This document shows positions 2,605 to 26,600 of a DNA stretch of 64,000 nucleotides, piece after piece. The position numbers and the translations under genes were made by a program. The notes beneath the pieces were generated by a model. It did not search any database. It had not been told where the DNA came from and saw only the letters and a program-made list of their open reading frames with translations. The DNA is from Lytechinus pictus (lineage: Eukaryota). Location: contig NC_087249.1 of assembly GCF_037042905.1 (NCBI RefSeq), positions 40,176,001-40,240,000 of the forward strand, given 5' to 3'. The stretch's first letter is position 1. Each line of letters opens with the position of its first letter.

Positions 2605-5600
2605 ATGGTTCGTATTTTAATTGGTTTCATGTGAATTTTACACGTTAGTAGATTTAGGATTGTGATAGTAATGAAAGTAGGACTACTGCTTGTTCTGATT
2701 TTTTTAACGTGCATATCGGCCATGGCATTGGCATTGCATTGCCGAATTGCATCGCGATGCGATGTGAACTTAATTAATTGGCATTATACCGTGGCCTGGC
2801 ATTGCATGCAGAGAGCCGAGTGTGAATAATGCTGAGTGAGAGAGGAGGGGTTGACCAGGCGCGGATGGGGGGGGGGGGGGGTGATCACAAAAGTCAAAAT
2901 TGCAACAAATGACAATGTCAAAGAGAGAGAAAGAAGAAAAGAGACTTACTCTCAGAGAAAAAAGAGAAGAATTTCAGAATCAGAGAGTGTTTTACTTAGC
3001 CAATAATAGGGTGTCTGGAGAAAAAAATTATTTTTCTTATTTCAAGAAAATATCACGTTTTCTTTGTGAATTTGAAGAGAAATGACCTTCAGACTGACAG
3101 AAATGTAAAATTTTTGAAAAAAATCCAATTATTGGCTGCAAAAAAGAAGAATGAAATTAGGTAAATTTTCAGCATTTCTCTGCCATAGACTGTGTAGTTA
3201 AGAAATGGACACACACAAATCCAAATTTTTAGCTTCCGAGAGCTGTTATAAATTTATTATTAATGCCAAAAACTTGTCCATAAAGAGTCCAATAGGATTT
3301 TTTATGCTCTATCTGATGGTATGATTTTTATAAAGATTTGGAAACCAGATCACAATGAAAAATTGCGACAAAATGAAAAAAATTGTGCAAAACAGAAATT
3401 TCATTTTCCCATAGAAAACGCATGGAGAAATGGCAATCTCAACACACACAAAAATAAGGGTTTGCAATTTATCTCTAAATCCTTATTTAAAATGATCATA
3501 TAAACTTGTCCTTACTGTCAAAAGAAGCCCCTGAATTTTCTCTTTCCATACATGCCAAACACAAGTTAATAATCAATTCAGATCACATTTTTCTAGTAGC
3601 CTGAACTTCCCCGAAAAAATATGCCATATTTTCCCCTAAATTAGCCTGTTTTATGCTGACACTTTTCAGTGTGGCTTCAGACACCCTACCAATAATGCCA
3701 TGCCATGGTATTACTATAGTAAGCTTGTAACCGATTTTGCAATCGGCAACCGATTCCATTCGATTTCACCACAATCGGCAATCACTTGCCGATCTTCGAT
3801 CATGCCCCTTGAAGGAAAAAAATCGAAAATAAAAAATCGGCGTAGATCTGGTTACAGTGCGTGATCGCTCAGAACATATTTCAAGATTGTTTTTGAGGTG
3901 CTAGCTATTTAGAGGTCGCATTATTCAGGGAGAAAGACGCGGTATTATCTATGGCGATGTTTAAGAGGATAGATATCTTCTCTTCCAACTCATGGTGATA
4001 GCGGATGCCGCCGTGAACTTTGAAAGGTCGTATTACCGACGGAGCTCACTGCGTTACTCTCTTACATCGTTTATGATTATATACATTTTATTTTCAACCT
4101 CGTGGTGATAGCGGATGCCGCCGTGAACTTTGAAAGGTCGTATTACCGACGGAGCTCACTGCGCTACTCTCATACCCCCTTTATAATGATATAAATATTC
4201 TCTTCAACCTCGTGGTGATAGCGGACCCCGCCATAAACTTTTAAAGACTGTACTATTGACGGAGCTTATTGAGTTACTCTCTTACATCGTTTATGATGAT
4301 ATACATTTTATTTTCAACCTCGTGGTGATAGCGGATGCTGCCGTGAACTTTGAAAGGTCGTATTACCGACGGAGCTCATTGTGTTACTCTCTTACATCGT
4401 TTATGATGATATTCATTTTATTTTCAACCTCGTGGTGATAGCGGAAGCCGCCGTGAACTTTGAAAGGTCGTATTACCGACGGAGCTCACTGCGCTACTCT
4501 CTTACCCCCTTTATAATGATATAAATCTTCTCTTCAACCTCGTGGTGATAGCGGACCCCGCCATAAACTTTTAAAGACTGTACTATTGACGGAGCTTATT
4601 GCGTTGCTCTCTTACATCGTTTATGATGATATTCATTTTATTTTCAACCTCGTGGTGATAGCGGAAGCCACCGTGAACTTTGAAAGGTCGTATTACCGAC
4701 GGAGCTCACTGCGCTACTCTCTTACCCCCTTTATAATGATATAGATATTCTCTTCAACCTCGTGGTGATAGCGGACCCCGCCATAAACTTTTAAAGACTG
4801 TACTATTGACGGAGCTTATTGCGTTGCTCTCTTACATCGTTTATGATGATATTCATTTTATTTTCAACCTCGTGGTGATAGCGGAAGCCGCCGTGAACTT
4901 TGAAAGGTCGTATTACCGACGGAGCTCACTGCGCTACTCTCTTACCCCCTTTATAATGATATAAATATTCTCTTCAACCTCGTGGTGATAGCGGACCCCG
5001 CCATAAACTTTTAAAGACTGTACTATTGACGGAGCTTATTGAGTTACTCTCTTACATCGTTTATGATGATATACATTTTATTTTCAACCTCGTGGTGATA
5101 GCGGATGCCGCCGTGAACTTTGAAAGGTCGTATTACCGACGGAGCTCACTGCGCTACTCTCTTACCCCCTTTATGATGATAGACATCTTCTCTTCAACCT
5201 CGTGGTGATAGCGGACCCCGCCGTGAACTTCAAATTGATTTGAAAACGCTAGCTACCCAAAACATTTTAATAACATATTTCAAATCATCGTGCGTGCTTG
5301 CGTCTTTTACTTCATTTTAATTGCACTTGCGACTTTAAGATGATGCGTCGTAAGAGATCATTCCAATAATTCTAAATCGCTAGCACCTAAAAATACTTCT
5401 AAAAGATGTCCCGCCGATCGTTCATTAACCTGTGATCTATGAGAAATATTTTCATTTTATTTTCCTTTGCGCCTTTGCTCGGAAGATGCGTCTTTCGTTT
5501 ATCTTTCTAATAACAATCACTCGGTTTATTTTAAAGCAATAACACCTCAAAACCCCTGGCTTTAAAACATGTTCCAAACGATCGCGCATGTTGGCGACTT

Positions 5601-8600
5601 CCATTCCAATGCATTCGTCTTTGTGACTTTGTCAGGAAGATGCGCGCGACCGCGAAACACATTTTGATGTATTCCTTTGTTTTTAAACATCGCCGATTCG
5701 ATTTTCGATTCGATTTCGATTTTAGAAGCTTAACTGCCGATCCGATTTTCGATCTGATTTTTGATCCGATTTACAACATTATACTATAGTATAGTAGGCC
5801 TACCCCCTTTACCTTTAGTAAACTTCAACATGTTCAAGGCCTTCTTTTGGGGGGGGGGGTCTTGTCAAGTACGATCCGAGGCCCTGCTTGGGACAATTTC
5901 CATAAGACAACTTCCATGATTGTCATAACTGGTCATTATCGTGAAATTGGGAACCACCGTTCACTTTGTACAGTAGCGCTTTATTCATTCACACGCACGG
6001 TTCCCTATTTTCACCTCCATTCACAGGCGCGCATGCGTATATAAATCGACAAGTGGTTCCTGAAACCACGATTTGGCCCATTACTGTCACCATGCTCATA
6101 ATAGATGTCTGTAGATGTGTATTCATGATCATGGTATCCCTCTGACTTTTTCAATATTTTTTCAGGTCAAGATATAAAAAATAATTGACTGTGTTGTAAT
6201 TTGGTGACTAGAATATATAAATTGTATCATTGTAAGTTCTAAAGCAGGCTGGGGAAGGAAAGGAAGGGGAAAAAAGACAGTTGAAGAGAAAGAAAACAAA
6301 ATTTAAAGGAGAAATATTGAGAAGAAGAAATGAATCGGGTTATTAAAAAGAAATAAGAAAAGTATAATTATTTGTAAGAAGAAAAGAAGATGGAAGTTGG
6401 GGGGTAGGGATGATATGATTGTAAAGAAGGAGAAAGAAGGATATTAAAGTAAGGAAATCTTCTGAGTTGATCAATGCTTTGAATTCATTAAATGAAAATC
6501 ATAACAAATGTTGATTTTAATTGCAATTACATTCCATTTCTTTTGATTGTGAAATAAATTTCTGATTATAGAAAGTAAATCAGAATGATTCAATGTGCAA
6601 TACAAGTAAAACCACTTTACATCATTGCATTAAAAAATTAGATTAAAAAACTATAATAATTACTTTACTCTGTCACCTGTCTTTCTGAGAAGCTTACTTT
6701 GCAAGTACTCCAAAAATATTTGTAGAACAATTGACATCAATGGCATGATTAGAAAAATTGAGATTCACAGTGAATATGGGCAGGGTCATTGTCGCCATGA
6801 CCATTGTATTTATTTGTCAAATTTCTGTGTGAGCTCTATATATCGCAAATACGGATGAAGCGGTGGGTTCGGGGGATACATGTGCTCGGCTGCGCGACCT
6901 GCCGAGCATCTCTAATTCAAATATTACCTTATAATTAATTCAATTTAGAGTCCACAAAGAATGAAAGTTTGTATTAATGTAAGAAGATTGATAGAAAAAT
7001 TTAGAAATGTAGCTATATGGAGCAAGATATTAAATGAAATATGAAAACCACCACCACCATCATCATCATCATCTGATTCAGAAAAATAACATAACTTATA
7101 AAGTTGTGAACAGTATTCAGATGGACTTCTGATGATTAATTGACATTAAATCTGCAGTTAAGTTGTTTTAATGAAAACTCGAAATGTTATTGTTAATTAT
7201 TTAGTAGCTTGAGATTTCAGGGAATTGTTAGTGGTTTTGATATGTTTTCACTTCTAATTTGTTCTATTGAAATGAATTAAAAGGTTTACTTAGTAATCAC
7301 TGTATATATGTAACTATTTTCTTCTTTTTTCTAATTAAGTATTTTAAGCATGAATATCACTTGTAAGTTGTAACATGTATTATAGTTTTGGGAGTTGGCA
7401 AGCAATATTTAGTAAACAGGTTTATTATTCGTATATTGAGTGATTATCTGCAGTCAGATGCTCACTTTGCCAAACCTTTTAACTTCTCTTCCCTTGTTGT
7501 TTTTAAGAAGAGTGGGAAGATTAAGATCCAAACTTGACAATTTTTAACTGCTTTGCAATGCTTTAATTTTAGCCTGACTCAAAGGCTGCAGAGAAGGTAG
7601 CGGTGAAAGTGGTGGCACGATGTCGACCTTTCACAGATATCGAGAAAGAGAAAGGTGCTTCAAGAATTGTCAAGATGTCTGGAGACAAGACTACATTGCA
7701 GAATCCACAACAGGGCGGCACTGGAAAGGTTTGTTCAGTCTATTATTCAAGTGATGAATTTGTCATTTTCTATCTTCCATTGCAATAAGTGTATATTCAA
7801 TTGTTTTTCTTTTGTAGCAAGATGTTTATATAAGGGGGACAAGGAACTTTCTATAATTTCTTGTTTTTACCCATTTGTTAAACAAAATTTTGATGTACAC
7901 CTTTAAAAACCTTATAATTGCACCAAACTGATATATATCATGAATTTAAATTTCATCATGTTTTTCATTGTATTGTGTCATATCCTTTACTTGACTAAGA
8001 TTTCAACAGATGAAAGATTGTAATGTGTATATTTACCATGCATCCTCCCTTAGTTTGATATTTTAGTGATGACACTAATGTAGAATGATATAACACACTA
8101 TTTATTAATTTTGTGTTTTTTCTGTTCATTATTACTATATTTAGGAAGCTGTATTTGCTTTTGATGCCAGCTACTTCTGGGATACAAGAACAGTAAGTAT
8201 TTATTTCATAAAATTCTTTCTCATTTGCTTTGTACATACATCAACCAGGGCTCCATTACTCAAAGAGTTGCAATTGATCCAATCAAACTATGGAAATCCA
8301 TCAGTGTAATGATTCTTATAGGAAATATACAGTATGCATTCCTTTAGAAACGAGGAAAGACTCATTTATTTGTTAAGAAAAATGATGACAGATGTATCAT
8401 AAGAGAAAATAGTCATAGGGTGTGGTCTTTATAGACAATCTTTGGTTGCTAAAGTTTGTGGGGTCTTATTTAAGCTGTTTATAGGTCGCAAAAATGCCAT
8501 TTTTGGAATACTGGAGCTATTTTTTTCCTTGCTATTCCACACTCATTACTTTTTACATTAAAAAAAAAATCATTATTATTATTATTATCATTATTATTAC

Positions 8601-11600
8601 TATTATTATTATTAATATTGACTATATTATTATAATTATTATTATTGTTATTATTATTGTTATCATTATTATTATTATTATTGTTATTATTGTTTGCTGC
8701 AGAGTTTGGTATACAAAGAGCAATGTGAACCCTTATTGAAGAGAGCAATGGAGGGCTATAACGTCACTATCATTGCGTTTGGACCTACAAACAGCGGCAA
8801 GACCCATCTCATGTCTGGGCCTATGGAGGATCCAGGTCTTGTTCCAATGGTAAGAACAGTCTTTATTTTTCCAATCTACTTGCATCTACAGTGTGTCCCA
8901 GAAAAATGAAACCAAAACAGTTTTTCAGCTGTCTTTTTTCAGTCTACTTGAAATTTACCATTTTTGTTATGTTAACACTTTAAAGTACAATACTTTCTTT
9001 TGTGATTCCTGACAAAACAAAAAGCATCTTGATCATATCATATAAAAAAAAAATAGAAGAAACGCCATGGGTTAATAAGGCACAACTTAATATAAAAGAA
9101 GTAAATAAACTAAGCAACTTTGAGGTTACGTGTAACTGTCTTTAATAACCATGGCCAAGAGACCAACACAAGGTGGCGCGCTTACACTTTGTGATTGCAA
9201 CATCGAATCATCAGTATAATACGATAACAACACACTGGCGTGACTGCCTTTTACTTTTCCCATCTTTTTACAATAAAAACTGTATGACAAAATCATGATG
9301 ATCCGTAATTAAATCACTATTACATAAAAAGGGTTAGACCTTCACTGGTGTAAGACTCTGATAAATCTAGTCACCAATGTATCATAACAAGTTGAATACT
9401 AAACAGGCATACCACAACAAAGGTCACAATTTAAAAAAAAACATCAAATGGCAGCACCACTTCTCATCTCTCTCCATCATATAAATTGACGAAAAACATA
9501 GGTGGGCTTACAAACGGATTGACAGCAAATCATTATCCCCGTCTAGACAGCGGATTGCAAAAATTGGACCCAAAACTACGCCAAAACACAAGGCTCAATT
9601 AAGGCTGTGCACTAATAGCCAATTCTCGACACAAATTAAACAAGCATAAACCTGCATTAAAAAGGAAAACATGCATATTGGCAAATAAAACAAAAAGCAA
9701 TACAATGACCTCAGTGCAAAGTTTCCACATAGCAAATAGATTAAATGCACAGTTGAACGGTGTCACCCTAAATAGCAAAAACATCTGTGTATGATAAAAA
9801 AGGATGGCACAAAAAAACAGGACAAAAATTACTGAATTATGAGCAGTCTCATACCATCTCAATGAGATAAGAAAATACTTGCAAAAACGGAAATGGATCA
9901 AATAGAGGAAACAGCCACTTACCCACAACGTATGACTGTTTAACTACATAAAACTGACACAAGGAACTGAGTAACATTACTAGGTATAATGCATGATACA
10001 CACAAGTTATACAACGTCTGAAAACAAGGCATATAAATCATTATTCAGAACAAAAGTATACTAACTAATATCAAAACAACACAAATCATCTTCTCAAATA
10101 TCACTGTAGGCACACATTAAAGAATCAGCAAATCATCACCTGTCCAGTATAACGTCATAAAAATACACATCCACAAAATCAACAACACTAATAACTGGCA
10201 GAATCACTCACCCAAAGCACATCACAAATTACATCATGAAACTGTTTATTGTGATCAATCAAAATAACATACTATACTGTATACAAAAAATCATTGAACC
10301 CCAAAATACCTGCAAATAATTATAATAAAATATCCTGACAGAAAATTACAAGTCATAAAATTTACATGGCACTCCTAACCTTCCTGATTGAACAGAAATA
10401 TACCTGCAAATAAACATAACACAAAAGTACATATAAAACCAAGTAAGCATGCTGTCCATATCGGCTAACAACATCAAGTGATGAAATGTATAAAAGTCCT
10501 GATAGAATGTTCTTAATAATCACATAATATGGCCAGTCCAATTATAAAAGCACAGTGTCCAAGCTCACGAAAGATGTAGAGTAATCACTGTCCATGGAAA
10601 GAAGGTATGTCTACGTAATCATAGGTCTTGAAAGCAAGGCGAGCGAACACTGTATCAAACAATAAATGTCTCTGGAGCGTTGATAGGCGAGAATCATGAA
10701 GAAAAGTCCTAGGTAGGGACCAACATCATACGGTCTATGAAACTTTACCACTGGGATAGACAGACCAGCAGGACCATACCCTGGAGTAGCATGGGGCCGG
10801 TCTGGCGGACGAGTGTGAAGACATCCTTGAGGGTTGGACAGATCAGCAGGACAATGCCCTGGTATAGCATGGGGCTGATCTGGAGGACGACAATGATGAA
10901 CACCTTCAAGGACAGACAGATCAGCAGGACCAAGCTCTAGGGTAGCAAGGGGCTGATTTGGAGGGCGAGTACGAGGAGCGACACCAGTCCGGATTGAATG
11001 AACATGGCTATTAGAGACTGGGATGCTAGGTGAGTGCTTACATTCGGTAGGATACGATGCTGGCGGGATGAACGACTTACAGCTCTGCGGGATCAACCCG
11101 TTCACGAAACATTGTACCCGCGCCGGACGGATAACTTGCGTAGTAGAGCTACTGCTGCTGACGTTAGCCTGGCACGGAGGCATAGCGGTTACCCCGGTGT
11201 TTGCTCTGTGGCGGTTACTCGCGTTGAAGGGTAACACCGAATCGGCCGATGGTGTAACGGACACAGTATCAACACTACTAGAAGTGTCAAACATGTGATC
11301 AAGAGGCAGTACGGTACCTCCACGGTCAACGACAAGGTTGCTACCTATGCAGCGATCCAGTAGCATATCGAGTGATATGTTAGGCAAAACTGTCTCATCA
11401 GGCAAAGTCATGTTAGGGAAAATTGTCACATCCGGCAACGTCAAGGTAGGCGAAACTGTCACATCAGGCAAAGACAAGTTAGGCAAAACTGTTACATCAG
11501 GCAAAGTCATGTTAGGTGAAATTGTCACATCTGACAAAAAGCAAGGACCATGGTTCTGACTAGGATCCAAATCAAGGGACTCTGTAAAACTGCAGGTCAC

Positions 11601-14600
11601 ATTGGATTGGCAACAATCCCAAATTACCAAAGGCTGAAACTCATCGGCAGAAAGTGGAGAGCAACTCAATCCACTCAGAGTAGTAAAGGCAATATTACCA
11701 TGCCAACAATCAATGCAATGGAGTGAAGAAGTTCTGAAATCACTCAAACGTAAAACTGGAGGAGAGCATGAACTGCTTTCATAAGTGTCTGTAACTGTAC
11801 ACTCTTGGAACAATGAAGGCACATTGGCATCGGTATCCTGACCAATTACATCACTATCAATAGACCCTACATTATCTTTCCTTGTTTCTTTTACATCTCT
11901 CATGTGACCAATAAGCACATCATCTCCATTAGCTTTATCAACCACATCAACATTAGCTTCATATCCAATTTCTTCATTCCATTGTTTCACATCACATTGG
12001 TCACTTTCATGATCCAAACCATCACAAGCTGCATACTCAACCTCCTCATTCCATTCTTTCATGTCAGCACTGTTTGTTGCATTCACCTCATCATCACTAG
12101 TCACGTATCCATCATCTGCATTACATTGTTTCACATCAACTATGTTAGAGTCATGACCTCCACCATCACTACTCTTGTATCCATCTACATTGCATGGTTT
12201 CATTTCACCTTTGTCAATTTCAAGCACCTCACCATTACTAGTCTCATCTCTTCGATCTTCATTACAAGATTTACAATCATTACATTGAGATTCATTCAAC
12301 TCGCTATCACTTGTCTCATATCCATCATCTCCTTTGTGTATGTTAGTGTTTACTGGTGTGACTGTGGTCCCTAATGTAACATGATTATCAATCTCACGAC
12401 TATCATCCATTTCACTCTCATTCATCTCATGCTCCCGATCAATGAGAATGTGATTTGTAATTGAATGTATGCCAGCGAGATCAACATCACGAAAACATGG
12501 CGGAGCTGCTCGAGATGACAAACCATAGCAGAAAGCAGTACCGTCTCCAAACCTGATCAACTGCTTGGAGGGGCGAACTGAAATATCGTTCTGCTCCATG
12601 AATGGAGCCCCAGCAACAATACTGCGAGAACCACGCAAGTAGTCATCATGGACTACCACACCATCAAACCAAAGCTCACAATCCTCATACAATAATGTGA
12701 ACTGAGTCAAACCGACCACCAGGGTCTGATCAACTAGACTAACAATGGACACACCATCAACAAAATAATCATCAAAACCAAAATCATCAACAAGAATCTC
12801 GACACCAATATCATCTGCTACAGATTCAGTGATTAAATTGAGCTGTGATCCGCTCTTTAATTCAACATTAATCCGCGAATTATCTATTGTGCGGGCACAA
12901 AAACAAGGTTTATTCAATATCTGCCTGCAAGCAGAAAACTGGCGCAACCTTGGTTGCGACGACCTGCTAGCCGAACGCCAGCTCGACGCATCGTGAACGG
13001 CTGCCGCGGCGGTCAACGCGGCCCTGGCCATGGTATATGTGGGACTACACAAATTTATATTCGGGAAGAAACCCAACCTCTCGTCTACCACCGATAGAAC
13101 ACGGCGTGCCTAGCCCCAATTTATAGGGTTAAATTAACTTGGGAAGGCTTATTTATACTCGATGGGTGGATACAATCCAGCTGCCACCACGCCATGGGTT
13201 AATAAGGCACAACTTAATATAAAAGAAGTAAATAAACTAAGCAACTTTGAGGTTACGTGTAACTGTCTTTAATAACCATGGCCAAGAGACCAACACAAGG
13301 TGGCGCGCTTACACTTTGTGATTGCAACATCGAATCATCAGTATAATACAACACAAAACAACACACTGGCGAAAAGAAAAATGGAATAGAATATATCATT
13401 GATTGTCTTCTTCAATCAACAAACAAATAAAAAAAGTAAAATTGTGCAACCAGTTGGGCATTCAGGCTATAAAACCTACTATCAAATCCATTCATTGAAA
13501 AGAATATATCTACATGAAAATGAATAGTTGTATCAATAGCTAAGTTACAGAAACATGAATATATTTTATAATCATTGCCTAAAGTATAAGTTAACTAAAA
13601 GACAAAGGACAGAAAAAGACAACAGTCTTAATCACTCGACCACGATGCCCCTGATTAATTGTAGGATGTAGTGAGAGTCTTTTTTCATGGCGTATGTAAC
13701 ACAAAATTTTAATTGAATCTCTGATCAATTTTCAAAATTGGTTGCATTGATAATCACGTGTAATCAATCGTAAATAAATTGTATGATCAATCTCTTTGAG
13801 TTACTGGGCCCCAGACCACTTATATCTGTTTTTATTAAATCACTAATATTTCTACCTTAACTACTGTTTGTGCCATTCACTGAGGTTTAGGTACAGAATT
13901 GATGATTATTGAAATGACTAAGATTTTTTTAAATTCTGAATATTCCTCCTTTTATTCCAACCCTTCTTGACGATAATGATACTATTTGTTATTCCAGATC
14001 AACCGAAGTCTCTTCAAGCAGATCAAAACCTCAAAGAAGCAGTTCCTTGTGACAGCATCATTTCTGGAGGTAAGAGCCAGATGCATATCTGGGGCCCGTA
14101 ACACAAAGCTTAGCAATGATCGTAGAACATTTTTCTACGATTGATTGCATTGACTACAATGTACAATCAATCGTGAAAATCAAGCTTACGATTAATCAGT
14201 AATCTTTGTGTTACGGGCCCCTGGACAGTGTTTCATGGAGCATCTTGCCAATGAATTTCATCGGAAGATTTGCTTTGTGCCAATCAGATGCAAGGATTTC
14301 AGTTGCTTGTAACAAATAGTAAAGAAAATAGAAATGCCTTGAAGTAAACTTTGTAAAATAAACTTTGTGCTGTGAAGTTTCTCAAAGTGAACTATTCAAA
14401 AAAAGTAAAACATATGTCTGTAGAATAAACAAAAGAAGTTTTGTGGTTTATAACTTGTACCAAGGTGACTAAAATTGAGACTAGTGCTATACCTGGTGGG
14501 TGTTTCAGAAAGCTGTTCGTAAGTTATTAAGAACGACTGGTGATCCTTTTTATGCACTTATCGCCAATGAACATTTAATGGTGAATATCATTCACCACAA

Positions 14601-17600
14601 GAAAGGATCACCAGTCGTTCTTAAAGTCACTCTTAACTTACGAACAGCTTTATGAAACGGCCCCCAGATGAGAAAATGCTATAGGTGTAGAATGGGTACT
14701 CTTTTTGAAACCTTTTTTGTGTTTGCAGTATAATTGTTGGTGCTGATAGGTAAAAGTTGTTGGAATTTATAAAATACTAGCAAGCAAATAAACAAAAGAA
14801 AAATAAAAACATTCAAAACAGTGTGGTGTGTTTATGTTTATCATTTGATTCTGAGTCCCACAATCATGATAATAATGATTGATGAAAAACATAGACAAAA
14901 GTCTCTCTATGCCCTTAGCAAAGTTAGACGAGTACACATTCATGAAACTTAAAATATTTGCAAGTATTATAAAACTAACACTTTAGGCTTTTCCTTTCAA
15001 AATTGTCCCTCATATTAAAAATCAGTGGTGTATTATGTGAACAAGGTTTTTATTATTTTCTCTCATTTTCAATCAACAAACTATTGTTTTCATTCTTTCT
15101 ATTCCATTTCTTTTTCTCTATCCAGGTGATGGATGAAAGTATGACTGATTTACTCAACCCCCACACCGACGACATGCAGATCAGACAACACCCTCAGATT
15201 GGAATGTAAATAGTCTTTTATACCATAAGAGGGGGAAAAAATTACTAAATTACTCAGGGGGGGGGGGGGGGGCTCGGGCCGATTTCCCCCCCAAAAAAAA
15301 TGCTCAAAAGAGCCCTAGAAAAAATCAAAGGAGCCATGGAAAATTCCAATTCACAGCAATGTTAAAGCTTATCCAATTTTCCTGACTTAGGCATTAGGTT
15401 GTGAAAAGTTACTCCTGAATATGAAAAAAAAAAATTTGTGTGTGTGTGTCTTTCATAAGCATTATTCTTGAGATCATAAGTTGTTGTAAAGCTATCCCAT
15501 AAAAAAGTAATGACAATGATAATAATAGCTTGATTTATGTAGAGCTTTTCCCAGAGGATACAAATCACAAATATTATCACCGTGGTTTTAGATTTGACTT
15601 TGAGTGGCTTAGAGAAAGTACTGATACTTAATTTACTTACTTTAATCCAACAAACTTCGATGTATCATGTCAAATGTACAGACAGAGTATTGTCATGACT
15701 TTTAAGAAATTCAACTCAAATTGCTTTTTTAATGGATTTTTGTCTTGTGTTTGCTTATGAATAAAATATTCAAAATGGCAAAATAAAAAGTGGGTATTAA
15801 AGAAAACATGAATACACTCGACTTGAATATGATATACGTCAGATGCAGTGGTACAGAATGCAAAATGAAATTCAATTTTGAATTGAGACAATTATTTTGC
15901 CTTTTCAGATTTGTTGATGGTCTATCGGAGCTTGTAGTGAAGAGCGGTGAAGACTTGTCCAGGTACTATGACCAGGGAAGCAGAGCTAGGAAGATGGGCG
16001 CTGCTGATATCAAGGCGCACAGAGCAAGGTAAGAACAAGTCTTGATTCTTCTCTCGCTTCATCCTCTCATTTATACTTTTCCTTCTATTCCTTTTCTACC
16101 TTTCATTGCACTCTATGTCATATTTTAGTTTAGTGATATAATAATATCTGTTAAGTGTCAATGAAGAGGAGGAGAAGTAGAAGAAGGAGGAGGAGAAGAA
16201 GAAATAGAAGAAGGAGGAGGAGGAGGACGAAAATGACAAAATGAGGAGGAGGAGAAAAAAAAAGAAAGAGAAAGAGTAGGAGGAGGAGTTGGAGGAATAG
16301 AAGAAGAAGTAGGAAAAGGAGAAGGATAGGGAGAAGGAATTGAGGAGAAGATGAAGGAGAAGGATTGGAGAGGGAGGATGATGATGAGATGGAAGGAGAG
16401 ATGATGATGAGATATCAAGGCACACAGAGCAAGGCAAGAACAAGTCTTGATTCTTCTTCTCTCGCTTCATCCTCTCATTTATACTTTTCCTTCTCTCTAT
16501 TCCTTTTCTACCTTTCATAGCACTCTATGTCCTATTTTAGTTTAGTGATATAATAATATCTGTAAAGTGTCCATGAAGAGGAGAAGGAGTAGTAGAAGAA
16601 GGAGGAGAAGAAATAGAAGAAGAAGATGAAGAAGAAGGAGGAGGAGAGGATGAAGAAAAAGAAGGAGGAGGAGGACGAAAAGTGACAAAATGAGGAGGAG
16701 GAGGAAAAAAAAAAAGAAAGAGTAGGAGGAGTTGGAGGAATAGAAGAGGGAGCAGGAAAAGGAGGAGGATAGGGAGAAGGAATTGAGGAGAAGATGAAGG
16801 AGAAGAAGGGGAAGATTGAGAATGGGGGAACTATGCAGGATGATGATGATAATGATGAAGAGGATCGGGGAGGGAGGATAATGATGAGATGGCAGGAGGG
16901 ATGATGACAAGGTGGAGGAGAATGTTGTTTTAATCATAGATTGCTGAGGCGCCGCAACGGATTGACACTTTCATTTGCTCTGTTTACAATCTAGGGCTCA
17001 TGGTATTTTCTCGATCGGTATCGAGCAGAAAGATGCAGATGGTGGTCGTGGTCTTAGGAGTAAGATCGTCCTAGCTGATCTGGCTGGTAAGTAAATTGAA
17101 ACCCAGCCGTACATTGCAGGGGGGGGGGGCAGTTCCCCCTCCCCTGAAAACATTTTTTACTGAAAATTCTCACCAGATTCACCCCAAGTGTGTATACGGC
17201 AATCCTTCTATATCACTTTAGAATAATCAAAAGCACACCCCTATGACAAGCTCAGTCGCTTCACTCCGTAGATCTGGGTTTTTACAAAATTTCGCATCTT
17301 GCCCCCCACCCCACTTCGGAAAAAATTCTGCATACCCTCATATGAAGACTCTCAACAGGGACAAGAAAAAAACTTTTTAAAACATTCCCTTCTCTTACTA
17401 TTCATGTTTTATTTTAATAAAGCATTAAAAACACATATTTTCATGATTTGCCAGTGCAGTTTGAAAGCATATTGGAAGTACCAAAATCTTGTAAATTTCT
17501 CATAAGCATTATAGATAGGTTGTCTTTTTAGACATATGGTTGTTTATGGTAGGTAAATTTTGATGTTGGGCTGTTGAACATACAGAACTTTCTTTCAATA

Positions 17601-20600
17601 AAATGCATATTTACAATTGATAGATCAATTTTAGGTCAGCAAAATTAATGATGTTAATATTTATTGGTCAATTTTGGCTATAGCAAATTCATAAAAGGTA
17701 TTTTCTCTTAAACTTTTTGTTGCAAGGAACTGGCTATCAACTTGAATCAGTTGTGAGGCTTATGATTGATTTATAAACAGGTGTTAAATCAACTGTTTAT
17801 TGATTGTAAGGTAATTACAGTGTTTCGTATATCTTCCTTTAATTCTGGTCTTATTTATATTCAATGAGTTAAGGACACATACCAATGAAAGTCCTTATTT
17901 ACTGCTTCTGATGACATTAAACAAAAAAGATCTACTCTTCAAAATCTTATATCTTTGTTTCTGTTTGTTTCATTTTACTGTGATTTATTTCATTCACTAT
18001 AATTTTCTCCTTTTTTTTCAGGTTCAGAAAGCGTTCAGAGTAAAGACAAAGGGTAAGTATATATAACCACTTATCTCTTTTTAAATAAAAAAATTGTGTT
18101 CTGTCATAGCATTTATCTAACACTGAAAAAACACTATATAATATATCTTTTTTTGCAAAATGTAGAATAATATTGGACTTCATGAGGATCTCTGCCATAC
18201 AAAAAAGGCAATGGCTCATAATCGGAACTCGGGTTTAATCTAAACTCTGGTCTACAGTTGTAAATCAACTATGGATAGCCAGTTGGGCAATTAAAAAAAA
18301 AAATGTTTTTCTGACCCCCTGTATGTGGGACCTTTATTAAATTTTCTGTCTCTGATTTCTTGTTCTTTTGACAGTCTGTAATGTTCTCAAAGGACCATGA
18401 CTTGGTTAGTTTATGAAGTGAAGGAAGACGTGAGAAAAATGGGGGTTTGAAGTACAAAAAAGGTCTAATCATTTTATGGCATTGCCCAGTTCTGACACAA
18501 ATCTCTATCAGTGCAGGTTCACTTTATCAGCTCATGTCATTGAAAAAATTGTGTCATCTATCTTGTATTCTTCATTCGTCTTGAGAATATGCTATGCCAG
18601 CTAGGGAGCATTTTGTTGACTGCATTGTATCATACATCTTTTCTCTCCCCATCTCACAGACTTGGTGCCTTGGGGGATGTGATCAGCGCCCTCGGCGATC
18701 CTCGGAAGAAAGGGGGCCATGTTCCTTACAGGGATTCAAAGGTTACACGTTTACTGCAGGTATTGTAATAGCTTTGTATTTTTTTGCCCAGCCCGCCCGG
18801 CTCCATTAAATAAAGATTTCTTTTGAATAGTTCGCTTTGAAGACCTTCATAGCTTGAAGTTAATGATACAAAGTTTCTTTCAAGGCGTTTCTAAATTTTT
18901 CACTACCTAGTATGTTATAAGCTACTGAAATTCTTTTATGTACAGTCAATCTTTCTAGTTTATTTTTCAGTGTTTTCTGTGGTGCCATCTTTACCTTTGT
19001 ATTAACACAGTTCAAATGAACGTTTTGGGTCCTCTCTTTTTCTTTGTTGTATTTTACTCATATTGAGCAAAATTGAATATTGGTCCTCATTTCCTGTATT
19101 TGTTCATTTACTCAAGATGACAATTTCTTTTTTTTTCAATTTTATTTGATTCCATTCTTCTATGATCATTAACTATTGAAAATTTGTTTTATCATTCACC
19201 ATGAAGTTTAGGTAAACGTCAAATGAATTGGAAAGGGAGACCTTTGGATTAAAGTTATTTAGTTAATCTTTCTCCTGTCCCATCATCCATCCTTATCCTA
19301 TTGTTTGTCTATGTTCTTCATATGTTTTTTGATCGTGTAGAATAATGATAATGTATTCCCATGAATCCCAGGACGCCCTTGGTGGGAATGCCCACACGCT
19401 GATGTTCACGACCATCTCCCCGTCCGATACGTGCTACAACGAGACCCTGACCACCCTACAGTACGGGCAGTACTGCAAGAACATCATCAATCACCCAGCA
19501 ATAAATGTGGTATGTACTCTTCTTGCTCTTGTCAACACAATGTTCTAAAGTTACACACTGTTATGAGCCTACATGATAATTGATGTGAGGGCCAAGGAAA
19601 TTCACTGAATTGTAGATATCGTTGAAGCAAAATCAAATAGAAATCGAAATACAAAATAATAGAGTTTTGAGGCTGGATGTTTCGTTTTCTTTTTAATAAA
19701 CTCGAATTTGAGTAGAGGAGGCTTGATAATTCATTCAGTGCCCTGGTTCAGTTCTAGAGCCCTTTGATAAGGCATTTCCTCGTTACTAGGTCCCTCAGAG
19801 AGGACCTTAAGCTTTTGGTTCTCTGATTGCTTGCTTACAAGCATTCTCGCTTTCTGAGCAATCAAGTAAAATATCACCACCACCATTCCTTTTTGTACAT
19901 TCATTCATTTCATTTGAGTAGAATTGAAAGAATGTGAAATACATTCTATTAGGTGACTTCAGAGTCCCTTAATTGTTTGACCAAGAGAATATTTGACATT
20001 TAGAAAATTTTGTTTGACCAAGAGATTTCTTGACATTTTAAAAATTTTGTTTGACCAAGTGAATTTTTGACACGTTTTCTCCCCAGGATGATAGTGAACG
20101 ACTGACCAATCAACTTCGCGAGGAGATTTCTCGTCTGCGGGAAAAGCTGACCGGTACTTCACTGACCGAAGCGGGAAGCAAAGAAGATGTGGCCAAACTG
20201 CAGGTCAGTACAGGTCAAATGTTATACGAATCAAAAGTTAAAAATTATCTTTTAAAATGTGTGTCATTGTAGAGTTGTTGTGGATCAGTGGTTAAGTCTT
20301 GGGACTTTGCACCACGTGGTCATGGATTCCAATCCCGTCACAGCACCTCCAGCCTTAATCTGATTTACAATTTGCCACTCTACCACCCAGGTAAAGTAAA
20401 TGGGTATTTGGTAGGAACACTTTCCTTGAATGCATGCATGAGCATCTGATCAGGGTAGCTATGCTGGTGCCGTGGTTGTAGTATGCTATGCTTATAACCA
20501 TTGAATCAAGCGATAAATGTTTCATATCGTTATATTAATTATTTTTTGCAGATTTTAATTGATCAGATATTTATCATTTATTCATTTATTTATTTATTTA

Positions 20601-23600
20601 TTCATTCATTTGTTCATTCATTTATTTATTTAACCATTCATCCATCCATTCATTCATTTGTCTTCTTTTAGTAGGGTTGCTCCATCAATAACCTGTATAC
20701 TGTTGTAACTCGAGGCCCTAAAACATAAATACAATTATTACAAACATTTAAAACATAAAAACATAAAACATAAAAAGCAAAAAAAAATAAAAATAGACAA
20801 ACAATTTCAAGCAAATAAGAAGAAAAAATAAAACAACACAAAGGGCCACCTCATTTACTAAGGCTATCATAAACCAAATTTATTTCTACCGATCAGGATT
20901 TGATAAAGGATCTTCAGATTGCAAAGCGTCAAGGATGGGAGGAGAAGGAGAGACAATCAACTCAGTATGAAGAGGAGAGGAGAGAGAACCTCGCTAAGAA
21001 GGTAAGATTTATCAACTTTTTTGTTATTCAACAATATCTTATAATTTGGCCTACAACCTTCCCCTTCCCATCCGCTCAGTATAAAGAGGAGAAAACCTTG
21101 CTAAGAATAATAATATATAATAATATTTCTTATTTACTCAGGGTAGCCACTTCAGCTCTAATGAACTGTTCTCTCAGCTGGCCCTGCATATCGTAATGCT
21201 AGTATTACCCTTCTCCATTCTAATACATTGAGAGAAGGCAGAAAGTCCAATTTTTTATAAAAGTCTTTGGTATGACTCGGCCGGGGAATGAACCCACGAC
21301 CTCCCATTCATGAGACAAGTATCATGACACAAGTATATTTCAAAAAATGCAAAAAAATGAGAGAAATATATGAAAAGAAATTTAATTAAAATCCAACAAT
21401 GAATATCAAAGTCATGAACTTTGGGAATTTGGACTTTGCCATGTCACAAGTGAGCAGCTATCCTATTTGTCATGTAATAGAAATATCCATAGGTAGCCAT
21501 TTTTTAACTGTTCATGATGACTAAAGATTTTTTTTTAGTGTCTTAACCCACGACCTCCTAGGAGTATGTCATTTCATGGAATAATAGTCTTTTAACATTC
21601 TCATTCCACTCATTTCTTTAGATATTATGGTTTGGAAAATTGCATCTGATCACAAAATTTAAACTTTTTAAAGAAGCCACAAAACGTCTTGCTTTAAAAT
21701 AAAATTGATTCTGTCAGCTAATAATGAACTCTTTTGGTTGGGACGGTACATGAAAGAGATGTCAATATGTGAAATAAATTGGAATAGTTAGATATAAATT
21801 GCCATTTTAATTATGAAAAAAAGTTACTTGATGAAATTATATATTCTTTTACAGGGTATTCTGCAGTGGGTAATGGCGGAGAGCGTTCATAGAGACAACA
21901 GAGAGATGCAGGAAAGGATCTTACTCATGCAGAAAGAAAAAGATCAGGTAAATAATGAAGGAGTGAGGTAGGGAGAGACAGATCTGATTTCATTTGTGTA
22001 TCTAGGCACTGAGTAGCTACCTCAGCTGTGGTAGGACTGTTTTTTTTTTGTAGGGTCATGCAAATAAACATAATCCATGTCCAATATGCAAACAACATTC
22101 CCATTGTAATTCCAATATACAAACTGAAATACAAACTTAATATGAAATAGAGATACAAAATGAGTGAGAGAGAGAGAGACAGATAGATAGTAATACAAGC
22201 AGGTTGACAAATGAACATAAGAGACAAGGGAATAGAATGGAGAAACAGAGGGCCAAACAGCTCTGCATCAAAAATAGAGAGAAAACCACTCAGACAGTGA
22301 AAATAAACCCAGACAAATAAGATACAGAGAGAAGATGGACTGAGACATACACAATGCAACTGACGGAGATACATAAGTAAAGAAAGACATTTGAATTGAG
22401 AATGATATACAGAGGGACAAATCACACAATCCTATCTCCATTCCTGTACATCTCTACACTGAAACCTAAAGAAAAATTGCCCTAAATTCTTGTACTTTTA
22501 CTGAACAGCATCTTCATACACTTAAATCTTGTCTTTCGCTCTCTTAATTCCTGCATCTGTGTTGTAGTCTGAAGCGGAAAAGCTTCTCCTACTTTCAGTA
22601 AATATGTACCTTGATACAAATGATTCTTATCTTTTCAGTTGCAACATGAATACAAGGACAAACGATCATTAGTGGATAGGCTGAAAGAGGATCTCCAAGC
22701 TAAGATTGTAGATTACACCAATATGGCCGAAAGTGGTAAGAGAGCTTGTTCATTGAATGACTTGTCATAGTTTAAATTGAAACTTGATGGAGAGAAAATT
22801 GATTGTTGAGAAGTCGGTCAGCAAATCAGTAGTCCAAAGTTTCAAGTCCAAAACTTTACCTCGGAATTGCGGCAGTAGCCCTTAACCCCTTGCTCTACTT
22901 TCCACACATCCTAACCGGCACTCCGACTCCTCTAACTCCTAGTCTTCTTTGGTCATCCATTATCGTGGAAGAGCCATGGTGTAGTGCAGGGGTTCTCAAA
23001 CTTTTTCCTTGAAGGGCCAGATGAGACTCCAAGTAAACCTGAAAGGGCCAGGGTGAAGTGGATACTTAGAAGAAAAAAATGTGTGCGAAGCGCAAAGACC
23101 CTTGCGGTTGGGGTCCTAGATGTTCTCTTGTGCAATCTGGCCCTTACTTTGGGAGCATTTAATCTAACAAATTTATAACAGTTTCACATGGAACGCAGGC
23201 AAAATTAGAAAAGATTTCAAAATACAGCGAGAGCAATATTAATGATAACAAAATTGTAGTACTTTGTTAAAAGGAATCTAGATTGTACCTATACATACCT
23301 GGTATTGGGGAGTTAGATAATGATTTGAAGTATCAAAATTTTTTGTAGTCAAAGTAGAATGAATAATAAAGCATGTCTGTTGTATACTCTAACAAGGGTG
23401 TCAGTCTCCTAATCAATTTCAATATGGGAAACGTGACAGTCTGTCAGCAACAAGTTGCTTGAACCTTGGCACAAAAGGTGTAATTGCCAGAAGGCACTGG
23501 TGCTATGGAGTCGCGGAAGCGGGGGGGGGGTTCCAAACCATGTACAAAACGTAAAAATGGCAATATGATTGTGATTTTTTGCATGGCCAGCCCCCCCCCC

Positions 23601-26600
23601 CCCCCCACTTTGAAAACCGTTCCACGACCCCTGTCAAGGTACTTCGGTATGAGTTAGTTCTTTAAAATGTTCATTGTGGAAAATGCTTTCGCACCTGTAT
23701 GTAGATCTAAACATGATGAGAACAGTGCTGGTCATCTAATAAGAAAGTAGATCGAACAGACCGAAAAGGCTCCACTAAACTTTGTTTAAAAGTCAAATTA
23801 ATTTGACTGCCATGAGTACTTTTATTACGATTAGGTCTACATGGATACACAATGTAATCATATTGAGCTATGTTTCATATTGTGAATTAAAAGTGATTTA
23901 AAAAAAAACCAGCAGAGTCTCGCGGGCCGGATTGAGAAGCTCCACGGGCCGGATCCGGCCCGCGGGCCGTAGTTTGAGAACCCCTGGTGTAGTGGTTCAG
24001 ACTCCCACCTTGTAATCAGAGGATCGTGTGTTCCATTCCCACCATAGCCTAGCATCCTTTGGCAAAACACACTTTGCTACTAAATATATAAGTACCTGAT
24101 AGGATATGAAAGTCATTGTAGCTTGCCCAGTACTGTGTGCGACTCAATGGCGAGTGGCTGGAATACTCCCCAGGGAGTGAAGCATGTGCATTGTGTGTAG
24201 GAATGATCAATTAAATCCAAATGTTCGGGGTAATAATAAATCTGTTAACCCTTTGAACCCAATACCGGCTTCACCATCATGAACGCGCATACACCCAAAA
24301 AGCCGGAATACCAGCTTCGAGTCATGTGACTTGAAAAGCAAGGGTTTAGATGTCAGCTAGGTGACCTTTTAAAAATGACGTCATCTTGGAGATATTCAGT
24401 CGATAACTTCAGTTGATAATTTCATCGATAAATGGTTTTCATTTGCAAGGCTTTAGCATTAAAAAAATGACAAAACTTTACTATCCTTCCAAGGAGTCTT
24501 GTGCGATTATACACGGCGAGTCGTATACAGACAGTGCTAAGCTATTGGTGAATTTTACTTCCGTCAAAGCAGTGATTTTGGTACAAACTTTGAGATTATT
24601 GTTGGTACGGGAAGGTACAGAACATCAGCCGGGCCAGGCCTTGTCCAAGCGGAGTAAGGTGACTTTGGCATGGCTGGGACCATGAGAATTAATAGATTAT
24701 TCATATTTCAAATGTCATATATTTCTTCGTTTTGGCGACAAGCTTGATATCTGCAATAATTCAGGTTGAGGGTCACTTCACGACCGTCCCAAACAATTCA
24801 GGGTTCAAAGGTTAATGCATGAGATAGTACAGTATGTCTTAAGTGCAATATAAATAACCCAATTATTATTTCCATACAGTAGTAGACTAACTGAGAAGTG
24901 GAATATTAACCATGACGTTTGCATTTTTGTTACTCTTTGACAGGTAAGGGAAGTGAGTCAGAGACAAAGGCAAGGGTGAATGCCATCCACGAGGTGAAAG
25001 AAATGATCAAGAAAGAAAGCGAGAATCTGAAAGACGTCAAACATAGACTCAAAGAACTTCAAGAAAGACAGAAGAGGGAGAAAGAGGTGAGGGAAAAAAA
25101 GGCGGTTCTATCTTTGTGAATATAAGGATGCATTCCAGGAGGGAGGGGGATCCGGGTAGGCACTCAAATTATATTTTTATGTGCCTCACGAAACCTTGAA
25201 ATTGGGGTCTTATGATGACTTCAAAGAGTAAAATATGGGGTCTTGATTAAATGATTTTTTTTTTTATTTGATCTGATGTTAGCATCGACATTCTAATTTG
25301 ACCTCTCAAAACTGGAGGTTTAATCAATTTTATTAAATAACAATGATACCATTGATAAAAGCATTTAAAATACTTCTTTTTCAAACTCAGCAATGGAAAT
25401 ACACAGTGGTAATACTACAGTATTATGTTACTGAATATTTGATAAATAATTGGTTAATTTTCTTGATCCTAGAGCCTGTTGCATGATACTGACTATTATT
25501 ATTGCCAACCAATGGTAACTTCACTAAAATCCTTGATTCTGATTGGCTGTTGAGTATTGTAACCATGTTACACGGTAGTTATTATATGACACTGAGATAG
25601 ATCCTTGTCATTTGATTGGTCAAAATCGGTCAGTCAGCCCATTTTACAATGACGTCATCAACCATGCAATTTTAGATCCATTCATCGTGCAATTTTGGAT
25701 CCATACGATTTTGTCCATTGCACACGCGCACCCAGACTACAGACACCATTAGTGCAGCGCGCATGTTGGATGTACGCAATAATCAACAGACCGAGCTCGC
25801 ACTGCATGAGCATATTTTGCATCAAAATTCACAAATTTCATTATGAAAAAGAATCTATTTTAGATGTCATACAAACCAAATAATAAATGTTCTTTCCATT
25901 CGTGCAATGGACAGAATAATTTATTCGGTGAAAGATGAAATGAATGATCCATTCAACTTGGCTATGCCTCGTTGAATCGATCATTTCATCTTTCACCTCA
26001 TGAAGTATTCTGTCCATTGCACTCATAAAAATTTATTATTTGTATACCACTGAATGGCAAAAAGTACTATATAGTAACTTATATGCGAACAGGGTGAGAA
26101 TACACATTCCTTCAATCTCTGTTATCACTGTATCTCAGGATATGAGAAGCCAGCATGCTGATCTCCACCACAACTCAGAGCTGCGTCGCCTGGCCCGGGC
26201 TGAGGAGCGCAAGCGGATGGAGGCGGAACATGCCCTCTCGCTGGAGGAAGAACTTGAGAGAATGCGCATGGAGGTCGATCACCAGAAGGCTGAGATTCAG
26301 GTAATATAGCCCATAATTGTCTCCTGGAACCATTTGGTCCCTGTACAGAGCCTATGGGATTCACAGAAATTAGGAGACAACAGGTTAACCTGTTTCTGGT
26401 AAGACTGGGTGATCTCTGATTGCCTATGGGAATGACAAAATTCTGTATTCAAAGGGTTAACCCATTGCTTTCTAGAAGTGGATGTTTCCTGTGCAAAGCC
26501 TATGGGAAACACACAAAAATTGTCGCCAAAAGGGTTAACCCATCTCCCGTTGGGACCAGGTATTCCCTGTTCCTAAGCCTATGGGGATTACAGAATTCGT

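Follow-up and report, generated by a model that had tools for sequence, protein, structure and literature searches.

KIF26A/B, VAB-8 and Smy1 are kinesin-like proteins reported to be without motor ATPase activity, and Vik1 and Cik1, the partners of Kar3, have a kinesin fold that is not known to contain a nucleotide site. In KIF7 the switch motifs are canonical, and it is a change in chemomechanical coupling that makes the protein immotile. Its immotility has been described in PMC5881503 and PMC8886809. Kinesin-2 motors, which have a coiled-coil stalk, commonly heterodimerise, and in every kinesin-2 model the coiled coil ends with a beta-hairpin motif (Webb, Toropova et al. 2025, PMC12527917). 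Here we analyze a kinesin gene of the sea urchin Lytechinus pictus, LOC129261998 (automatic name 'kinesin-2b-like'), which lies on the + strand of a 64,000-nucleotide window of contig NC_087249.1 (contig positions 40176001-40240000; all other coordinates are positions in the window). An original prediction from the bare sequence had taken the interval 15909-19509 to encode part of a candidate pseudo-motor, with a degenerate switch I and a shortened loop 11. Both features are present in the protein, and the loss of switch I and the short loop 11 are common to all of the cnidarian and bilaterian orthologues sampled.

The gene product, XP_054755999.1 (P0160), is 715 residues long; residues 2-715 align without a mismatch to the + strand from 7573 to 29345, with a TAG stop immediately following, so that the 715-residue frame is intact, as had been predicted. 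The first exon mapped (7573-7728, aa 2-53; exact P0160 match between an AG acceptor and a GT donor) carries the N4 motif VVARCRPF, in which RxRP takes the form RCRP, and is followed by exon 8145-8192 (aa 54-69, P0160 match). Exon 8703-8849 (aa 70-118; Pfam Kinesin profile 58-104, 51 bits) contains alpha-1 and the P-loop GPTNSGKT, and the N1 or Walker A motif (GxxxxGKT, of the general form GxxxxGK[ST]) is therefore intact. The equivalent of the EIYNE box, which reads EVMDE, is split over exon 13998-14069 (aa 119-142; located by tblastn with the crinoid orthologue, exact P0160 match) and exon 15126-15205 (aa 143-169; P0160 match, RNA junction 15205>15909), the second of which also holds loop 8, RQHPQIGIFVDGLSE.

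The next three exons hold the degenerate switch I and the remnant of loop 11. Exon 15909-16028 (aa 169-209; P0160 match, RNA junctions) encodes alpha-3 and the first part of switch I (ADIKAHRAR), and exon 16995-17086 (aa 209-240; Pfam profile 203-233, RNA) the end of switch I (AH), beta-6, beta-7 and the start of switch II (DLAG), so that the N2 motif reads KAHRARAH in place of NxxSSRSH. DLAGSE, the start of N3, is completed by a 31-nt micro-exon at 18022-18052 (aa 240-250, (G)SESVQSKDK(G); seen in contigs and raw junction reads), which is the sole remnant of loop 11: the full loop of ~21 residues with RLKEGxxIN is missing, and 8 residues separate DLAGSE from alpha-4, compared with 21 in canonical relatives of the same family. 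Exon 18660-18759 (aa 250-283; profile 259-289, 34 bits, RNA) then supplies alpha-4, loop 12 and the start of alpha-5, and exon 19372-19509 (aa 284-329; profile 290-327, RNA) alpha-5 (LGGN), beta-8, alpha-6 and the neck linker INHPAINV. On the Pfam Kinesin profile (PF00225), position 233 is the last one matched by the exon that ends at 17086 and position 259 the first matched by the exon that starts at 18660, which leaves 11 residues for ~25 profile positions; in a HMMER alignment to KIF3B (3b6u), loop 11 is short by 13 residues. The protein scores 269 bits against PF00225 (cut-off 29.3, profile 1-327) and a sponge orthologue 390 bits. All of the sequence claims of the original prediction hold on re-reading of the exons.

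The motor of L. pictus thus keeps Walker A, RxRP, DLAGSE, the switch-I Arg, loop 8, the basic loop 12, alpha-5 and the neck linker, and is without the switch-I Asn and Ser residues and the 13 loop 11 residues that precede alpha-4. The serines and the asparagine of switch I help to coordinate Mg and the gamma-phosphate, and loop 11, on becoming ordered at the microtubule, links binding to catalysis. Switch I takes part in ATP coordination and hydrolysis (PMC5498027).

In order to establish the splicing of this region, two assembled-transcript runs and two raw stranded RNA-seq runs from L. pictus were compared with 15100-20300. Contigs of 2485 and 2197 nt each span all six junctions (15205>15909, 16028>16995, 17086>18022, 18052>18660, 18759>19372 and 19509>20087), every one of them GT..AG, and both have precisely 31 nt between 17086 and 18660. 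The AG/GT borders of exons 15909-16028, 16995-17086, 18022-18052, 18660-18759 and 19372-19509 agree throughout, and the junctions are identical to those of the predicted splice model. Raw reads cover 17086>18022 (5+14 reads) and 18052>18660 (3+16), no alternative junction within 15100-20300 was seen among the contigs and the raw reads of the two RNA-seq runs, and first mates map to the minus strand, as expected for transcription from the + strand. The proposed check for a missed exon of ~39 nt therefore returned the 31-nt micro-exon and no extra exon in the sampled RNA. A hidden exon in intron 18053-18659 was considered and ruled out, since three-frame translation of the intron gave no loop 11-like peptide and no RNA junction falls there. 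The same intron contains a dispersed repeat (18232-18579) at which contig word depth reaches ~9,600; as its reads come from both strands and continue into unrelated sequence, this spike reflects expression of the repeat from other copies, outside this mRNA.

An exhaustive phmmer search with the P-loop exon led to the crinoid orthologue P0005, and a search with P0005 to full-length relatives of ~700 aa. Members are found in echinoderms, hemichordates and amphioxus, in nemerteans, annelids, a brachiopod, bryozoans and many molluscs, and in cnidarians, three sponge classes and the nucleariid Parvularia (Nk52); more distant relatives occur in stramenopiles, a dinoflagellate and others. Their automatic names are inconsistent, and include kinesin-2b-like, FLA10, KIF4, KIF13A, klp-20, unc-104, CENP-E and 'early endosome antigen 1'. 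The crinoid Anneissia japonica has two members (P0151/P0152, 711 and 600 aa, the shorter without part of the stalk), both of them degenerate, the only lineage-specific duplication noticed in the family.

These proteins are linked by their tail. Over its C-terminal 68 residues the urchin protein shares 57-92% identity with every metazoan member, those of sponges included (E 1e-22 to 1e-39), and it matches the Parvularia tail (E 2e-18); a tail search against KIF3-type proteins gave no match. Seven positions (Q638, R644, R659, L662, Q667, D668 and A669) do not vary over 31 tails that range from sponge to shark. We defined the family operationally by a C-terminal helix of the form ...LEQRYRxLLE[DE]AIQDAV[FY]LSxRN..., RQHP in loop 8 and KKGGH in loop 12, and all three are present in the L. 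pictus protein. Canonical and degenerate members alike carry the loop 8 signature RQHPQxGIFVDGLSE and a basic two-residue insertion in loop 12, K/R-KKGGH. In a maximum likelihood tree of the motor region (LG+C20), the family stands apart from the KIF3 clade with 100% support, with Parvularia and then the sponges basal; the degenerate sequences of Cnidaria and Bilateria are united with an SH-aLRT of 99, and the branching otherwise follows the order of the species tree. The 99% support for a degenerate clade and its species-tree order make a single loss at the base of Cnidaria + Bilateria the simplest account. A literature search found no paper on this kinesin family or its degenerate motifs. 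The family is apparently unstudied and animal-wide, and is defined by a conserved C-terminal helix of its own.

A census of motif columns over 120 relatives, including 56 bilaterians and 26 canonical relatives, shows how far the motors have diverged. NxxSSRSH and DLAGSE are present in 26/26 canonical relatives (sponges, Parvularia and protists), in which loop 11 has 20-21 residues and reads SERxxxTGAxGxRLKEGAAINKSL. SSRSH is found in 0/56 bilaterians; the commonest form there is AHRxRAH, and loop 11 has 3-13 residues (8 in most echinoderms, 12 in most spiralians). Cnidarians, including a hydrozoan cluster found via Hydractinia, are degenerate too, with a loop 11 of intermediate length. Walker A is kept in ~55/56 bilaterians, R209 (the switch-I Arg), D237, A239 and G240 are at least 90% conserved over the whole alignment, and G96, G101 and K102 are also near-invariant. 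Many molluscs are without the Glu or the Gly of switch II (DCAGNN, EIAGFD, DLAMGE). Mean pairwise identity among bilaterians is 0.62 in the P-loop, 0.54 in switch I and 0.31 in the rest of loop 11, and 0.73, 0.63 and 0.62 in the microtubule-facing alpha-5, loop 12 and loop 8, respectively. The bilaterian conservation profile is flattened: the catalytic elements lose their usual pre-eminence, and the microtubule-facing elements are among the best kept.

A search with the tail only, and its follow-up, brought in orthologues from an ascidian, the catshark, caecilians, frogs and the axolotl. In these uncharacterised tunicate, shark and amphibian proteins RxRP, Walker A, both switch motifs and the HVPYRDSK loop (loop 12) have been lost, but they keep the C-terminal helix LEQRYRKLLEEAIQDAV. 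That of Phallusia mammillata (P0305), annotated as 'early endosome antigen 1', has no Pfam kinesin match; P0306-P0332, from amphibians and the catshark, are annotated as CENP-E, KIF4 or uncharacterised, and several chordate orthologues fall below Pfam kinesin scoring. No mammalian, avian, teleost, insect or nematode member is among the matches listed, an absence that word-based searches leave unproven; it is probably the reason why the family has escaped study.

The motor of the L. pictus gene is under strong purifying selection. Against Lytechinus variegatus, codons 1-329 show 33 synonymous and 7 non-synonymous differences (dN/dS 0.055), and the tail has a dN/dS of 0.008; against Strongylocentrotus purpuratus, the motor shows 102 and 18 (dN/dS 0.033). 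At the protein level, 707/715 residues are identical to L. variegatus and 683/715 (95.5%) to S. purpuratus. All of the exonic differences found in RNA reads (8/8) are synonymous and at the third position, and the gene is single-copy, since the family-specific tail exons occur in the genome only at the window locus.

The motor domain keeps the kinesin fold. An AlphaFold2 (AF2) model of aa 1-345 has a pLDDT of 91 and a pTM of 0.90, with a dip to ~67 only at the loop 11 remnant, and is predicted with confidence to be a kinesin head. Foldseek places KIF3B (3b6u) as the best match to this model (TM 0.88), then KIF13B, KIF1A, OSM-3 and the Giardia kinesin-2; a sequence search of the PDB likewise gave KIF3B 3b6u as best (216 bits), then KIF3C and OSM-3, and a PDB search with one exon was uninformative for family assignment. 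Kinesin-2 (KIF3A/B/C, KIF17/OSM-3, FLA10) is thus the nearest group as judged by sequence and predicted fold, and the L. pictus protein shares with it the N-terminal motor, the neck linker and the coiled-coil stalk; it differs in its degenerate switch I, in a loop 11 that is 13 residues shorter and in a tail unrelated to that of KIF3. No Pfam domain was found in the tail. AF2 models aa 590-715 as one continuous helix from 591 to 701 (pLDDT >96) with a 14-residue disordered end, and the beta-hairpin of kinesin-2 is not predicted in these last 126 residues; we therefore refer to the protein as an orphan kinesin-2 offshoot, outside the characterised subfamilies.

Two members of the family seem to have been catalogued before. 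Nucleariids are not known to have flagella, and the presence of an orthologue in the nucleariid Nk52 makes a strict link of the family to cilia doubtful. Lottia 235687 and Capitella 221227 were classed as 'Kinesin-2' without a subfamily, with low Pfam scores (Wickstead et al. 2010, PMC2867816 supplementary file 3); from the JGI identifiers in NCBI locus tags we infer that they correspond to P0197 and P0183. Members of 2A, 2B and 2C are present separately in Lottia (PMC2867816), so that this family would be a fourth lineage. An identity with Kinesin-17, which has a cilia-linked distribution (Wickstead 2010), was rejected because the Lottia and Capitella orthologues are classed there as Kinesin-2.

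That Walker A, RxRP, D-x-A-G, the switch-I Arg, loop 8, loop 12 and alpha-5 have all been kept is consistent with a microtubule binder of impaired ATPase activity, and we consider it likely that the protein binds nucleotide and microtubules and hydrolyses ATP poorly or not at all. It would serve as an anchor that moves slowly or not at all, set on a dimeric coiled coil, and its C-terminal helix would bind a partner. The head would still bind nucleotide and microtubules, would be incapable of normal microtubule-stimulated hydrolysis or stepping, and would make of the protein a static or very slow microtubule-binding module. Dimerisation would probably run through the ~370-aa coiled coil, and the conserved C-terminal helix would be offered to some partner. 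The pseudo-motor reading of the original prediction gains comparative support from the shared loss of switch I and loop 11 and from the canonical sponge and protist relatives; impaired ATPase activity, microtubule binding and a heterodimer partner are inferences. Several points weigh against this reading. Kinesins tolerate some deviation from consensus, and with the salt-bridge pair of DLAGSE and the switch-I Arg intact in echinoderms a slow ATPase may persist. A nucleotide-driven conformational change may still be important, given how the neck linker and P-loop are conserved. The tree came from a 'quick' search with KIF3-type outgroups only, and the comparison of conservation between clades mixes phylogenetic depths. 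A predicted complex of two tail copies with the motor, modelling a fold-back like the autoinhibition of kinesin-2, scored 0.00, which is evidence neither way.

The decay of chordate heads with the tail left intact suggests that the tail carries the indispensable function and that the head has been reduced to a structural or regulatory domain. A wider evolutionary reading, on which we regard the balance as even, is that of an ancient pseudo-kinesin family in stepwise conversion from motor to scaffold: canonical in sponges and unicellular relatives, crippled in cnidarians and invertebrate bilaterians but presumably still able to bind nucleotide and microtubules, and with the P-loop and microtubule loop erased in tunicates, sharks and amphibians, the C-terminal helix being kept throughout.

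In its proposed behavior the L. pictus protein would resemble KIF7/Costal2, in which the kinesin head persists as a scaffold or a static binder of microtubules and not as a transporter; KIF7/Costal2 belongs to another family, kinesin-4, and in the L. pictus protein it is the catalytic motifs themselves that have been lost. With KIF26A/B, VAB-8 and Smy1 it shares degenerate nucleotide-processing motifs in a motor-like domain retained under selection, although it has no specific sequence relationship to these proteins and they are absent among the search matches. Vik1 and Cik1 would represent the end-point of the same trend, a state that the tunicate and vertebrate orthologues (P0305, P0306-P0320) resemble; the L. 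pictus protein, unlike them, keeps Walker A and DLAGSE, and its motor is N-terminal and not C-terminal. The comparison with Vik1 and Smy1 drawn in the original prediction is best read as an analogy only.

The alternative that survives best is that the protein is still a working motor: the lineage would have evolved a compact loop 11 and a switch I of non-canonical form, and the homodimer would hydrolyse ATP and move, if perhaps slowly. In favour of this, echinoderms retain under constraint a coiled-coil neck, the neck linker, Walker A, RxRP, DLAGSE and the switch-I Arg. However, every bilaterian sampled has Ala, Arg and Lys where a canonical switch I has Ser and Asn, and the series of decay that runs from the molluscs without a switch-II Glu or Gly to the chordate orthologues without a P-loop is hard to reconcile with motility as the selected function; we think this account unlikely.

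Somewhat less probable again is an obligate pairing in which the protein, itself non-catalytic, would lend a catalytic kinesin (KIF3A, KIF3B or KIF17, for example) a second microtubule-binding head through a heterodimeric coiled coil, in the manner of Vik1/Cik1-Kar3. Kinesin-2 ancestry, the long coiled coil and a head conserved despite catalytic loss speak for it. The tail, however, has no detectable similarity to KIF3 tails and no predicted beta-hairpin in its C-terminal 126 aa, and canonical sponge orthologues have the same tail; pairing with a live motor is therefore not what the tail arose for.

It is very improbable that the short loop is an annotation artefact, in which a missed micro-exon or alternative splice would restore loop 11 or switch I. 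The original gene model was made without RNA, and intron 18053-18659 measures 607 nt, and there is an alternative GTAAAG donor at 18040; yet in two transcripts 17086 and 18660 are exactly 31 nt apart, the raw reads show these junctions only, no frame of the intron is loop 11-like, and the short loop is common to orthologues of >50 species, many of them from transcriptome assemblies. Least credible of all is a decaying paralogue or unitary pseudogene with a frame open by chance, for although the catalytic motifs are degenerate and the Pfam score is ~120 bits under that of the sponge orthologue, the original prediction was right to exclude it: the RNA junctions, dN/dS values of 0.03-0.06 in the motor and 0.008 in the tail, synonymous-only polymorphisms (8/8), 95.5% identity to S. 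purpuratus, the single copy and intact orthologues in species-tree order across Cnidaria and Bilateria all speak against decay.

Downstream of the motor, the stalk (aa 330-638, 20087-27817) is encoded by seven + strand exons placed by P0160 peptide matches, at 20087-20203 (also RNA junction 19509>20087), 20897-21001, 21855-21947, 22639-22740, 24949-25086, 26139-26300 and 27608-27817, with edges after the first of them good to ~2 nt. Residues 639-715, with the C-terminal helix, are shared between the penultimate coding exon, 28290-28439, and the last, 29265-29345, with the TAG stop extending to 29348; both rest on P0160 matches, conservation and the AF2 model. In all, 19 coding exons were mapped on the + strand, and a further upstream exon must hold the initiator ATG: the triplet at 7570-7572 is TAG and hence not the initiator, which corrects an earlier placement. 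The initiator exon was not found, as a scan upstream of 7573 for an ATG with a strong donor gave one unconvincing site, at 3316.

The intron after exon 15909-16028 contains a tandem duplication of ~405-500 bp on the + strand (16006-16910, copies starting at 16006 and 16411; evident in sequence and RNA) that takes in the last 23 nt of the exon and its donor site; the donor GT is GC in the second copy, and RNA uses the first donor only. GA-rich microsatellite arrays fill both copies. An AT-rich stretch at 8850-8960, kinesin-like in two frames (LFFQS, FFSLLEIY, VRTVFIFPI), had been a candidate for a frameshifted relic and was rejected as a chance resemblance, since it gave no Pfam match and the true exon is 13998-14069. 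Near-identical segments with common ORF pieces at ~9060-9300 and ~13190-13390 flank a long terminal repeat (LTR) element at 10611-13091 and, lying inside the 5.1-kb kinesin intron, probably belong to a larger nested insertion. A tandem array with a period of ~220 nt and open reading frames in its copies is found at ~3965-5320, upstream of the kinesin gene.

Catalytically impaired kinesins (KIF7/Cos2, KIF26, Vik1) are few, and each has been informative on how the nucleotide state of the head is coupled to the microtubule. On the comparisons made here, the L. pictus protein is a candidate new addition to this known class, and the interpretation of the original prediction is strengthened, not proven. 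Its family adds a deeply conserved impaired kinesin with canonical sponge orthologues that permit swaps and with graded decay across phyla, and it cautions that automated names for these genes are unreliable. Members are present in tractable animals (L. pictus, itself a genetically tractable urchin, Nematostella, Hydractinia, Xenopus and axolotl). If it is true that the intermediate head is a non-hydrolysing, nucleotide-gated microtubule anchor, the family would provide a natural series for the disabling and re-use of a motor.

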